Shown here piece after piece: positions 25,073 to 29,052 of a stretch of 64,000 bases of DNA (the first letter of the stretch is position 1; each line of letters begins with the position of its first letter). The notes under the pieces were generated by a model. The model made no database searches and was not told the origin of the DNA. It saw nothing but the letters and a program-made list of their open reading frames with translations. The translations under genes and the position numbers were made by a program. The DNA comes from Ministeria vibrans ATCC 50519 (Eukaryota > Protista > Filasterea), in the NCBI GenBank assembly GCA_943704425.1, contig CALSCP010000013.1:11236-75235 (forward strand), in the 5' to 3' direction.

Positions 25073-28000
25073 TTAGTCGATAAAGGACACGAGAATGTAA
25101 CGAGACCCGCTCGTTATAGAAAGGCCCTGATGGTGGTGGGTCATGCGGCCAGGGTGCATGAGAAGGGAGCCGCGAGGAAGAGGAGGCACGCGACAGTCGT
25201 ACCGCGTGAACCTAATGGGAGGGTTGGCAGTGATTTTCGTGTTAGGCGGGGGTAGAGTTTACATATCTTGTTTGTTGTACTATCACCTGACACCTCCGCC
25301 TGTAAAGTCAATGTCTGGCTGTGAGAGTGCAACGTTGACTGTGTATGCTGATGCGTCATGATGTCCCTCCAGTTCGCGTTGTCCGCTCATACTGTATTTC
25401 ACCACAAAAGAAATGTTGGTTCCTAAAATGAAATGAAAACACAACGCAGACTATCAATTTAAAAAAAAAAATAATAATAATAATAATAATCTCCCACCTT
25501 TCGTTTTGTAATTTCCATAGTAAGCAGATGCAATTGGCGCAATCAATCGCGTTACAATATCCTCCCACACACTTTCAAGCCCAATCTACATAATAATAAT
25601 AATAATAATAATAATAATAATAATAATAATAATAATAATAATAATAATAATAATAATAATGAATCACTCTCAACCACATACACATTCACTCACTCAATAT
25701 CTCTCCTCTCACCTGTCGCATATGAATGTCCACCGTCGGCACTTCCTCATATCCTCCGTTCAGCCGCACATCCACGCCCCTCTCTCCCCCACTCCACTCT
25801 CCGTATTCCTCCATTTCTTCAATCAAATGCTCACAGAATGCTTCGCTAAACATTTCAACTTGATACGTATCCTACAAAGCACAGCTCACATAATAAGTGA
25901 CAAAATCAGCCTTTTCTACTCTGCATTTGTTTTTTTTTTACCCGACAAGGCTCACTTTGCAAAGGAACTTTTCCAGCGTTGAGAAGCAAACGCGTTTCCC
26001 GATTGAGATACAGCGTTTCCCATTCGTCTCGATGAGAAAAATACTGATACAGTGTCGAATGTTTCTACTCAACCAATCAATCAACCAATGTCTCTCCCTC
26101 TTTCTTTCGCCCTTTCTTACTCTGTTCCGATACTTTTTCGATGTTCCCCCAAATCCAAATTCTTCTGCTTTGTCCGGTTTCTCTTCGTCAGTTACACTCT
26201 CATTGTCATTCAGCGAGCCATATTGCATCATGCTACTAACATGCATAAAAATTTGCCTACACACACATACACACACACACACACACACACACACACACGC
26301 ACACACACACACACACACACACACACACACACACACACACACACACACACACACACGCACACACACACACACACACACACACACACACACACACACACAC
26401 ACACACACACACACAAAACAACAACAATTAGTATACGTCTTTTATCTCCCTCCATCAGAATTACGCGTTTCTGAGATTGTTGCAAAAGGCCATGTCACTG
26501 CCTTGACTAAAATGATAGCCATGGGAGAAGAGGCCATGGAAGGAAAAGGGAAGAGAGCGACGGAGGAGATAAGACGCATAGATATAGGGAACGTTGAAAA
26601 CCCCCTTTTGAGTGTGGAGCGCAATAGCCTCGTAGTCATTGCTGCGCGCGTAAAAGCCTGTTTCGGGATCTACAGCGCCCCAAAAGTTGCTCCAAAAGGT
26701 CGTGGGGCTGCGGCGAAGAAGGGGTGCGATCACTTGGCGGTTCATGCGGATGAGGTCGGGCAGGACAAACGGGTAGGTGAACGAGACGATGGGATCCACA
26801 GCAAATAGATAGCTGCACTGCGTCTCTTGCTCCCACACGCGAATGGCCTCGTCGCGCATGGCCGGCTCAGACATGTTCTCTGTGCGCACCGTTACATTGG
26901 CATACTCTCGGAGAAGGCCAGTCTCAGTGGGAAATTCAAGGTTGTACTCGCGCACAAGCGACTCGCGTGTGCGGTGCACCCCCGAAAAATGCACATAGAG
27001 TGTGAGGCAGGAGCGCGCATAGGCAAGTCGATGCATCACCGACCCAAGCGACTGAGCCAGGTTCGTCAGGGCACCCTCACCATCGACCACAACAGAGATG
27101 AATACGGTGGGAAGCTCACACACAACCGTCGAGCTCTCCTGTTCGCTGGCGGCGGGTCGTTGTCGTCGAAAGAGTCGCTCATCGAGACTCGCCTGTTGGG
27201 CACGCGTGCGAGGACCGCCGTCGCCGTCAGCGCGCACTACACCGTAGTTAATGGGATTCCATCCGTACACCGGACGAAACTGCTGTGCGAGATATCGACC
27301 GAGTTCATTCATGAACACTTTGCTTGCGACCGGTCCGTTTCCGTGCACATGCACTGGCGAACTAGCAGTCAGTAGATTGTGCAATCGCGACCGGTCTGAG
27401 TCGAGTCGAACGTCGTCGTGCGAGCCTGCAAGTGTTTGGAAGAGACGCGCGTGTGTGTCGAGTGCAATGGACGGTGATTGGCCCGACAAGGAGAGGAATG
27501 CACGTGTGTAGAAGCGCTGGTCATCTTCGTTGGGTTGAACGGCGTACTGCTGAAAAATCGTGCGGAGAGCCTCGACACGCCCAATGAAGCCACCAGAGTT
27601 GAGAAAGCGATAAGGTCCATCGGTCGTTGGGTACACATGAGCCAGCGACGCGTCGGGCCAACAGAAGCGCTCGGCCGAGAAGAGCACGTCGACTTGTGCA
27701 GCGTGAAAGCGACTGAGAATAGTAGTGGGAGAGCCCGTCAGCACCGCATCATAGCTGTCTGAAAAGAGCACTATCGTACGCGCGCTCGTTTCGTTTGCAG
27801 TGAGCATTTCGTCAGAGAACAAGAAGTCCTTGAGAAGCGTCAGTTTGCTGGTGCCTCCTTCACCATGCAACAGGTTTGATGGGCCCTGCCACGCTTGGCC
27901 GAGTCCCAGAACACGGTACGGAATGCCGTACACTGCGCAACTGCGTGCAAATCGCATGTAGCCCTCAGTTGCTTGCGATGCCACAGTCACCACCACAAAG

Positions 28001-29052
28001 CGATCCCCTTGCGACTCGTAGAAGCCCTTTCCAGCCTCATAGGCAAACGGTCGCCCGTACTCGGTCGTCGACTGAAGCGCAAAGTTGTCCACGGGCTCCA
28101 CCGCAGCCGGTGACAACGCAAGCGCGCGTACCATTCGTTCCGGTGAATTGCCATGAAACATGTCCCGCTGCCACGTCGTTCCATGTTTGCCCGTCATAAT
28201 TGGAATGTACTGTATATAAAAACAAGAAAAATAAGATGACATTTTTTTATAATTAGTACAACTCTTGATTCTCTATTAATTATTTTTTATTATTTTATAA
28301 TTATTATTAATGTACCTCGTCAACAACAATAAGATTTTGACGGAATGATTGGGTGAGTAACCGCCTCGCACCACGATTAGAGAGCATAACACCAATGGTC
28401 CACCAGCTGAAGAGTGGCTCCACGGTGGCCTCGTCAATGCGCACCTCGAGCTTTTCGTCAAACATGGGTTTGCGACCGACATAGATAATGTCGTAGGGTG
28501 TGTCAGTAGCAAGCAAGTGGTTGCGAATGCCATTGTCCATGCGCGAAATGGCATCCTGGTGAATATCAATGTCATCCTCAAAGACAATCGCATACTCGAG
28601 GTTGCGCTCTACAATCTCCTGCCACACCAACAGATGACTCAACGCACAGCCGACCTCTCCCGTCGTCATGGCACGATCCGTCGTAGGGTCGGTCCAGTTG
28701 GAGAGCACAGTGACCCCTTTTGAGGCGAGCAGGCCAGAGGGATTGTCAACAGCCGCAAGATCAATCCCATCGAAAAACTCAACGGCCGGACTGCGCGGCA
28801 ACAGCGAAAAGTCGTGCAAGGGAAGCACGTCGTCGCTGAGACGCCTCCTTCGCTCGGCATGCCGCCCTGGCATGTTGATGAAGAACACACTGGCCCCGTC
28901 GGGAGCACCACAGCTGTCACTAGTGCAACGCGACGACTGAAAAAAAAAAGTATCAATTCGTTTGTTTTTTTTTTTGAACAAAAATCACCCTCTCGTACCA
29001 GAGCCGCGCCCGAGAAAACAGCAAAGAGTACCCAAAGACTTAACATAGCCAT
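25073..29052 (-). CDS. Fusion: signal peptide + COLGALT-type GT25 domain + full PLOD/LH3 (GT, accessory, 2OG-Fe(II) lysyl hydroxylase)
   Basis: GT25: [59 protein letters not shown]|YIPIM. PLOD: [122 protein letters not shown]. Confidence 0.9.
25591..25660. repeat. (AAT)n intronic microsatellite
   Basis: Seen directly. Confidence 0.95.
26259..26415. repeat. (CA)n intronic microsatellite
   Basis: Seen directly. Confidence 0.95.

Follow-up and report, generated by a model that had tools for sequence, protein, structure and literature searches.

A cellular, intron-bearing gene of Ministeria vibrans combines COLGALT-type GT25 and LH3-type domains in one predicted collagen lysine-modifying polypeptide

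Animal tissues are considered to have required, from early on, collagen IV and its hydroxylysine-linked glucosyl-galactosyl (Glc-Gal) modification. Recent papers on the structures of LH3 and COLGALT1 ask whether both families share one ancestor with all three activities, and a 2021 survey of non-animal collagens left the lysine hydroxylation and glycosylation of those collagens as still unknown. The closest described protein is L230 of mimivirus (895 residues), which, according to a review, starts with a GLT25D1-like domain and ends in a hydroxylase; the two activities were demonstrated in 2011, with glucose as the transferred sugar. The design of a single polypeptide for collagen lysine modification is therefore already known. 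Here, a stretch of 64,000 nucleotides from the filasterean Ministeria vibrans ATCC 50519 (assembly GCA_943704425.1, contig CALSCP010000013.1, positions 11,236 to 75,235; hereafter the window) was analyzed around a minus-strand gene at 25073-29052. Its product carries a signal peptide and a GT25 domain of COLGALT type, followed in the same chain by a PLOD-type glucosyltransferase (GT) domain, an accessory (AC) domain and a lysyl hydroxylase (LH) domain, as in LH3. We consider it probable (roughly 0.8) that this is a single-copy, expressed nuclear gene of a unicellular holozoan, coding for a multifunctional collagen-lysine-modifying enzyme of L230 type targeted to the endoplasmic reticulum (ER). 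As an architecture it is not new, since the L230-type design is already known from giant viruses. Nevertheless, one expressed, secretory-aimed gene with every domain type of the animal pathway, in a unicellular bearer of an NC1-collagen, makes both the question of a common ancestor and that of non-animal collagen modification testable, and it provides a cellular counterpart of the viral L230 family, as is required for working out the direction of transfer.

For Pfam, database searches, hidden Markov model (HMM) alignments and trees, single exons were used throughout. Like L230, the product of the window gene is a single chain with a COLGALT-like GT25 domain first and an LH3-like part ending in a lysyl hydroxylase, the middle domain of L230 being assigned here from its size and from its relatives. 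Over their full length, fused relatives of 899 residues can be aligned collinearly with three references, namely the GT2 domain of COLGALT1, residues 14-714 of LH3 and the crystallized hydroxylase chain of L230. L230 lacks a signal peptide and works in the viral factory, whereas the window gene is cellular, has eight introns and encodes a signal peptide; the identity of its product to the best fused relatives is only 35-40%. With animal LH3/PLOD3 (and PLOD1/2) it has in common the order GT, AC, LH and all metal, uridine diphosphate (UDP) and 2-oxoglutarate residues that were checked, whereas PLODs have no GT25 domain, the window protein falls outside the animal PLOD clade and its introns are not those of a mollusc PLOD gene. 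With animal COLGALT1/GLT25D1 it shares the GT25 (GT2) domain, the E-D-D manganese site and the GExGC pocket, but it lies outside the COLGALT clade (99% support) and lacks both the N-terminal GT1 domain and an RDEL-type C-terminus. Finally, its PLOD GT is homologous to mimivirus R699, a collagen galactosylhydroxylysyl glucosyltransferase (E 5e-43 to PDB 9dyt), which differs in being a stand-alone PLOD GT and AC protein with neither GT25 nor hydroxylase. An earlier note on this DNA had proposed the fusion as a 'Rosetta stone' for the partnership of LH3 and COLGALT. This value is limited, because LH3 and COLGALT1 chains already occur together in PDB entries such as 8zgc.

The gene consists of nine exons, which sum to 3201 nucleotides with consistent phases and encode 1066 codons plus a stop. 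Exon 1 (28999-29052, minus strand, as are all gene parts given below) contains the start codon and an 18-residue hydrophobic signal peptide, and is separated by intron 1 (62 nucleotides, GT..AG) from exon 2 (28316-28936), which holds the GT25 core of the COLGALT GT2 type with its GExGC uridine pocket and E-D-D metal motif. Intron 2 (28210-28315; 106 nucleotides, phase 0, GT..AG) lies within the GT25 domain. Exon 3 (26465-28209) spans 1745 nucleotides and comprises the GT25 tail, the PLOD GT and the accessory domain. To follow these features in sequenced material, contigs from public sequencing runs were aligned to 24900-29200. Runs X1 and X3 are two samples of one study (P1), X5 belongs to a second study (P2) and X11 is a DNA run; the other runs are tagged 'RNA?' by guess only. 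Every predicted intron is absent from the contigs of X1, X3 and X5, all gaps ending in GT..AG, whereas X11 contigs retain the introns and are collinear with the window. An RNA origin is assigned to the former because their contigs are intron-free and those of the DNA run bear introns. With only one GT25/PLOD locus in the genome, a retrocopy is an unlikely source of the intron-free contigs.

The gene is thus transcribed as one spliced mRNA. Contigs of X1 and X3 show the splice 28999/28936 and continue from 28936-28316 into 28209-26464 and then into all downstream exons, with intron 2 precisely removed; the crossing from exon 2 to exon 3 is unbroken in X1 record 2 (record positions 658/659) and in X3 record 7 (4289/4290), the latter a contig of 4960 nucleotides that runs across all nine exons. 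X5 supports the 3' exons, and the junction of GT25 and PLOD parts is crossed by the contigs of study P1. The earlier note had placed the gene at 25073-29052 and had asked for RNA reads across intron 28210-28315; the coordinates are exact, the splice sites are matched by the contigs, and the intron is crossed intron-free in the two records just given. Contig coverage stops at 29048, leaving the first ATG (29052) outside it. Codon 3 is also ATG, and a start there would still yield a signal peptide.

Adjacent GT25 and PLOD genes could in principle have been merged through an erroneous gene model, read-through or chimeric assembly, and the transcript contigs, as de Bruijn assemblies, do merge the gene with its convergent 3' neighbor. 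However, the GT25 tail and the PLOD GT are parts of a single open exon, uninterrupted by a stop, the phase-0 intron 28210-28315 is exactly removed in two samples, independent DNA contigs are collinear, and dozens of relatives carry the same junction in a single uninterrupted open reading frame (ORF). Such an artefact was rejected on the one-exon junction, the transcripts and the DNA contigs, and is extremely improbable. The fusion is real, transcribed and encoded as a single polypeptide, and the contention that it does not depend on the gene model is borne out by the one-exon junction together with the transcript contigs.

The identity of the GT25 domain is supported by several comparisons. 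Exon 2 matches Glyco_transf_25 (PF01755) with 74.4 bits against a cut-off of 24 (1.5e-20; profile positions 12-188 of 199) and the GT2 catalytic domain of human COLGALT1 with E 7e-21. In a GT25 HMM built from 15 fused relatives and 6 animal COLGALTs, the window sequence being excluded, exon 2 occupies positions 6-185 and ends at a conserved V-D-E, while the first 57 codons of exon 3 (28039-28209) occupy positions 186-238. Intron 28210-28315 therefore divides the GT25 domain, the tail of which shares an exon with the PLOD GT. In a two-sequence search, the tail aligns with E 7e-6, collinear with exon 2. That the GT25 tail, a short linker and the whole PLOD GT stand in one uninterrupted exon (28209-26465), as had been claimed, is thus supported by both the HMM and Pfam, and the GT25 motifs quoted earlier, including VDE/YIPIM across exons 2 and 3, are present at their places in the translations. 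The manganese motif (FEDD) aligns with Glu435, Asp436 and Asp437 of human COLGALT1, and the uridine pocket GEVGC with Gly408, Gly411 and Cys412.

The PLOD-type part is equally complete. Exon 3 matches GT_PLOD (PF25342) with 229.5 bits against a cut-off of 27 (4.6e-68), and the human LH3 structure 6fxk over GT and AC with E 1e-70; the LH3-type glucosyltransferase domain itself lies at 27274-28005. Aligned LH3 residues in the PLOD GT include the DxxD motif (Asp112/Asp115), Trp75, Tyr114, the Trp145 gate, Asp190/191 and the HGNG motif, and the alignment to 6fxk shows DSYD, QAW, FCWPD and EDDQ. The AC domain (26465-27222) is recognized through exon 3 residues 444-580, which align with LH3 341-475 (E 1.7e-18). 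Residues 461-550 within it (26560-26829) also match the non-catalytic GT1 domain of COLGALT1 with E ~4e-5, a likeness that bears on an earlier idea of the AC domain as a stand-in for the N-terminal domain of COLGALT. Exon 4 (26121-26256), covered by contig pieces, contains a linker and the start of the hydroxylase region. Exons 5-9 are collinear with the hydroxylase domains of animal and viral proteins in an LH HMM. Of these, exon 5 (25942-26064) covers the N-terminal portion of the lysyl hydroxylase, its joint with exon 4 (26064/26121) being seen in X1, X3 and X5, and exon 6 (25713-25871) encodes its OGFOD2-like part, the exon 5/6 joint (25870/25941) being present in the same three runs. Exon 7 (25498-25585) continues the domain according to both contigs and LH alignment, and exon 8 (25287-25422) carries the H-x-D iron ligands (HHD). 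Exon 9 (25073-25211), whose joint with exon 8 (25209/25285) is again found in X1, X3 and X5, contains the distal iron-binding His, the Arg that binds 2-oxoglutarate, and the stop codon (25073-25075). HHD, THHH and SRY fall in the columns of LH3 His667/Asp669, His719 and Arg729, respectively. The motifs reported earlier for the PLOD part (DSYD, FCWPD, NSGGFIG, EDDQ) and for the hydroxylase (HHDAS, THHH, RY) are all in the translations, and, judged by residues aligned with COLGALT1 and LH3, the three catalytic centers look intact.

From these homologies a pathway can be proposed. The protein would enter the ER via its signal peptide, and the hydroxylase would turn Lys in X-Lys-Gly of the organism's own NC1-collagen and of other collagen-like proteins into 5-hydroxylysine (Hyl). 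The GT25 domain would then add a first hexose to the hydroxyl, either galactose (Gal) as in animals or glucose (Glc) as in L230, with the LH3-type GT domain possibly contributing a second glucose. Several points weigh against this reading of the gene. Substrates, localization and both sugar steps are inferred, and the enzyme roles are predicted. L230 makes Glc-Hyl and not Gal-Hyl, so the first sugar does not follow from homology. In human COLGALT1, a salt bridge between Arg351 and Asp570 closes the C-terminal loop, and the Asp570Ala protein is inactive; this pair is not kept in the window protein, which has His and Thr in the aligned columns, although this stretch is poorly conserved and the tail is aligned with low confidence. 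Moreover, an N-terminal GT1 domain is absent before the GT25 domain, which is preceded by only the signal peptide and ~15 residues. Lastly, the transcript status of the runs rests on the contrast of intron-free with intron-bearing contigs, their labels reading no more than 'RNA?'.

The sugar question leaves room for an alternative in which the GT25 domain is not a galactosyltransferase, acting instead as a Hyl-glucosyltransferase like L230 or as a weak or structural module, with Glc-Hyl or Glc-Glc-Hyl as the product. L230 transfers Glc, and mimivirus R699, which consists of PLOD GT and AC, may prefer a Glc-Hyl acceptor. In the columns of Arg351 and Asp570, animal COLGALTs have Arg in 6/6 sequences and Asp in 5 (the sixth ends before the column), whereas both positions vary in the viral fused proteins, which the window protein resembles in lacking the pair. 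However, the window protein keeps an intact E-D-D motif and uridine pocket, the donor specificity of GT-A enzymes is not predictable from those residues, and the region of Asp570 is aligned with low confidence. Because the animal and mimivirus homologs differ, the first sugar is not readable from homology, and the alternative comes close to an even chance. The proposal of the earlier note that this enzyme could perform all three steps alone and yield Glc-Gal-Hyl is accordingly unproven, given that the GT25-like domain of L230 transfers glucose and that the window GT25 is without the Arg351-Asp570 pair. The more general reading as a multifunctional collagen-lysine-modifying enzyme accommodates either sugar.

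Candidate substrates were found in the same genome. A collagen IV NC1 (C4) domain (E 1e-23) is encoded at G000:C372:34129-34832 (minus strand) and upstream (locus L011:4161-7350), where it directly follows Gly-X-Y repeats with Lys at Y, spread over several small exons and containing many Gly-X-Lys-Gly sites. This NC1-collagen is a likely candidate substrate of the fusion enzyme. A preprint has reported that, outside animals, the NC1 domain is found only in the filasterean Ministeria vibrans. A second collagen-like gene at G000:C2017:35631-36714 (plus strand; locus L012:5632-6714) has runs of 5-11 Gly-X-Y triplets and is likewise rich in Gly-X-Lys-Gly. The earlier expectation of a non-animal eukaryotic host with collagen-like substrates was therefore upheld by these two genes. 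In a six-frame search of the 29.7 Mb genome, the only GT25 match (71.7 bits) and the only GT_PLOD match are both at the locus described here, and the genome is therefore taken to be without a separate COLGALT or PLOD gene. The neighbors in the window are cellular (HECT ligase, TMF1, NVL/Rix7, P450 and NIPA transporter), the guanine-cytosine (GC) content is host-like, and no viral genes were found among the neighbors of the fusion gene. For the NVL ORF, the best named relative is from Capsaspora, also a filasterean; together with the NC1 domain, a marker of Ministeria-like filastereans, this fits a host of the Ministeria kind. A viral island in the host genome was also considered as a source of the gene and was rejected in view of the ordinary cellular neighbors and the eight introns.

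The fused architecture proved to be common elsewhere, and the suggestion that it might be novel does not hold. When exon 3 was searched against 1.84 billion representative proteins, many matches of 700-960 residues were obtained in which the first residues of the query fall at about position 190-200; in many fused proteins the alignment opens with query residue 1 or 2, opposite residues 186-204. Pfam finds in these relatives GT25 followed by PLOD GT, often with OGFOD2-like and 2OG-Fe(II) (2-oxoglutarate- and iron-dependent) domains in addition. With our own HMMs, the order GT25 then PLOD GT was found in ~70/149 best representative clusters and in ~90/292 fetched proteins; among the fetched fused proteins, 43 have a hydroxylase and 37 do not. 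Nearly all fused relatives begin directly with GT25 and have no signal peptide. Six viral contexts were inspected, all of them compact and intronless: five giant-virus-like contigs and one T4-like phage. Four of the giant-virus-like contigs contain genes such as those for a capping enzyme, an RNA polymerase subunit, ribonucleotide reductase and a protein kinase, along with many orphan genes; the fifth (L015) has only GIY-YIG and PAP2 genes and was assigned mainly by its compact, intronless layout. The Tara contig pair L016/L017, which holds P0122, has too few neighbor genes for classification. On a metagenome contig from JGI (L021:6859-8787), a GT25 and PLOD GT protein stands beside gp13 and neck-protein genes and several 2OG-Fe(II) oxygenases; L021 being a T4-like phage contig, the fusion therefore occurs in tailed phages too. 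Altogether, GT25 with PLOD GT, and in part with AC and LH, is common in giant viruses and also present in phage, and the prototype, mimivirus L230, was characterized in 2011.

The window gene has company among cellular genomes. Two further contigs with ~50% GC, L014 (Logan SRR23272326) and L022 (activated sludge, ERZ937805), have GT25 pieces in shifting frames upstream of a PLOD GT and AC frame, and therefore look like an intron-bearing eukaryotic gene. Their proteins are 33-37% identical to the window protein, and the intron of L022 near V-D-E lies eight codons further on than that of the window. One protein, P0144 (753 residues), has the reverse order, PLOD GT then GT25, the same as that of GT1 and GT2 in COLGALT; its GT25 domain branches as the sister of the animal COLGALTs (Shimodaira-Hasegawa-like approximate likelihood ratio test 95), and it is a possible intermediate form. 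In the literature searched, no published cellular copy and no paper linking Ministeria with lysyl hydroxylase was found, and protein searches by word brought up the fusion in no named eukaryote outside animals, which is not evidence of absence. The occurrence of a cellular, expressed copy with introns in a holozoan whose genome also contains a collagen IV-like gene thus appears to be unreported.

How the gene came to be there can be approached through trees, all of which were midpoint-rooted and are poorly resolved near the window sequence, its placement shifting with taxon sampling. In the GT25 tree, the window domain is a long branch in an unresolved backbone with viral fused groups, while animal COLGALTs form one clade (99%). 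In PLOD GT and AC trees of 198 and 61 rows, the window sequence groups with animal PLODs, with some of the viral fused groups and with the two eukaryote-like proteins (96 and 92 support, respectively). In a careful PLOD tree of 32 rows, the window lies outside a 96/96 clade that unites animal PLODs with two viral fused groups, and falls in an unresolved group with viral proteins. A sister relation of the window and animal PLODs was not rejected by the approximately unbiased (AU) test (p 0.115). Introns were compared with one gene, a PLOD of the mussel Dreissena in which 17 introns were mapped, with no genome-wide control: of the six window introns from the end of exon 3 onward, 0/6 match in position and phase, the nearest being 1 nucleotide apart and the others 2-5 codons.

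One history compatible with these results is the domestication of a giant-virus gene, in which an L230-type gene without introns passed from a virus into the protist lineage and acquired a signal peptide and introns only afterwards, instead of coming down from the ancestor of animals and filastereans. Database entries with the fused architecture are overwhelmingly viral, the PLOD part of the window stands outside the 96/96 animal-containing clade of the 32-row tree and the GT25 part outside the animal COLGALT clade; in addition, the 1745-nucleotide exon is intronless where the mussel PLOD has about a dozen introns in the aligned part, and none of the six downstream introns coincides. However, the gene has eight spliceosomal introns, host-like GC and cellular neighbors with no viral genes nearby, the same arrangement occurs in the two eukaryote-like, intron-bearing contigs L014 and L022, and the window sequence forms a long branch with no supported nesting in a viral clade, the AU value for an animal sister being that given above. 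Domestication is possible, at clearly less than even odds.

In the opposite direction, the fusion may have been the ancestral holozoan state, with duplication, together with the loss or rearrangement of domains, giving rise to PLOD and COLGALT in animals, and with viruses capturing the fused form from such hosts. The animal PLOD clade is flanked by fused proteins on either side, and the viral groups closest to animals (P0104/P0108 and P0105/P0122/P0131) are fused; these flanking forms, and the similarity of AC to the GT1 domain of COLGALT1 noted above (E ~4e-5), which is in line with the structural likeness behind the question of a common ancestor, therefore keep the idea of a fused ancestor alive. 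The animal COLGALT GT25 clade is moreover nested among fused GT25 domains, and the genome has an NC1-collagen yet no separate PLOD or COLGALT. These points are offset by the midpoint rooting and poor resolution of the trees, in which the placement of the window varies with sampling, by the lack of any intron in common with the mussel PLOD gene, by the order GT1 then GT25 in COLGALT, which is not expected from a simple fission of GT25-GT-AC-LH, and by the fact that the organism of the window is the sole named holozoan sampled. An ancestral fusion is somewhat unlikely. The full scenario makes the fused GT25-GT-AC-LH protein the ancestral holozoan enzyme, kept in a filasterean with an NC1-collagen, with PLOD and COLGALT of animals descending from it by splitting and the L230 family captured from such hosts. 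It is rated a little lower still, as unlikely; were it true, the window gene would be a living example of the single three-activity ancestor that structural biologists of LH3 and COLGALT1 have proposed. Vertical descent and transfer to or from viruses are not told apart by the trees, and transfer from a virus with subsequent intron gain fits about equally.

Some smaller features of the locus concern its introns and its 3' end. Intron 3 (26257-26464; 208 nucleotides) consists almost entirely of a (TG)n microsatellite of ~170 nucleotides and intron 6 (25586-25712) mostly of an (ATT)n run, and both are spliced out cleanly in the transcript contigs. Downstream of the stop codon, the 3' untranslated region (24940-25072) is defined by contigs that extend to 24940. 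There they exit at a plus-strand AG acceptor (24940-24941), and a convergent plus-strand gene apparently overlaps the 3' untranslated region with its last exon; because they exit at this acceptor, the contigs are taken to be merged with the convergent neighbor, and the fusion gene is unaffected. Finally, single-base differences between runs were seen at 27006 (G>C in X3) and at 27548 (T>C in X1 and X5), and these are probably strain or allele variation.

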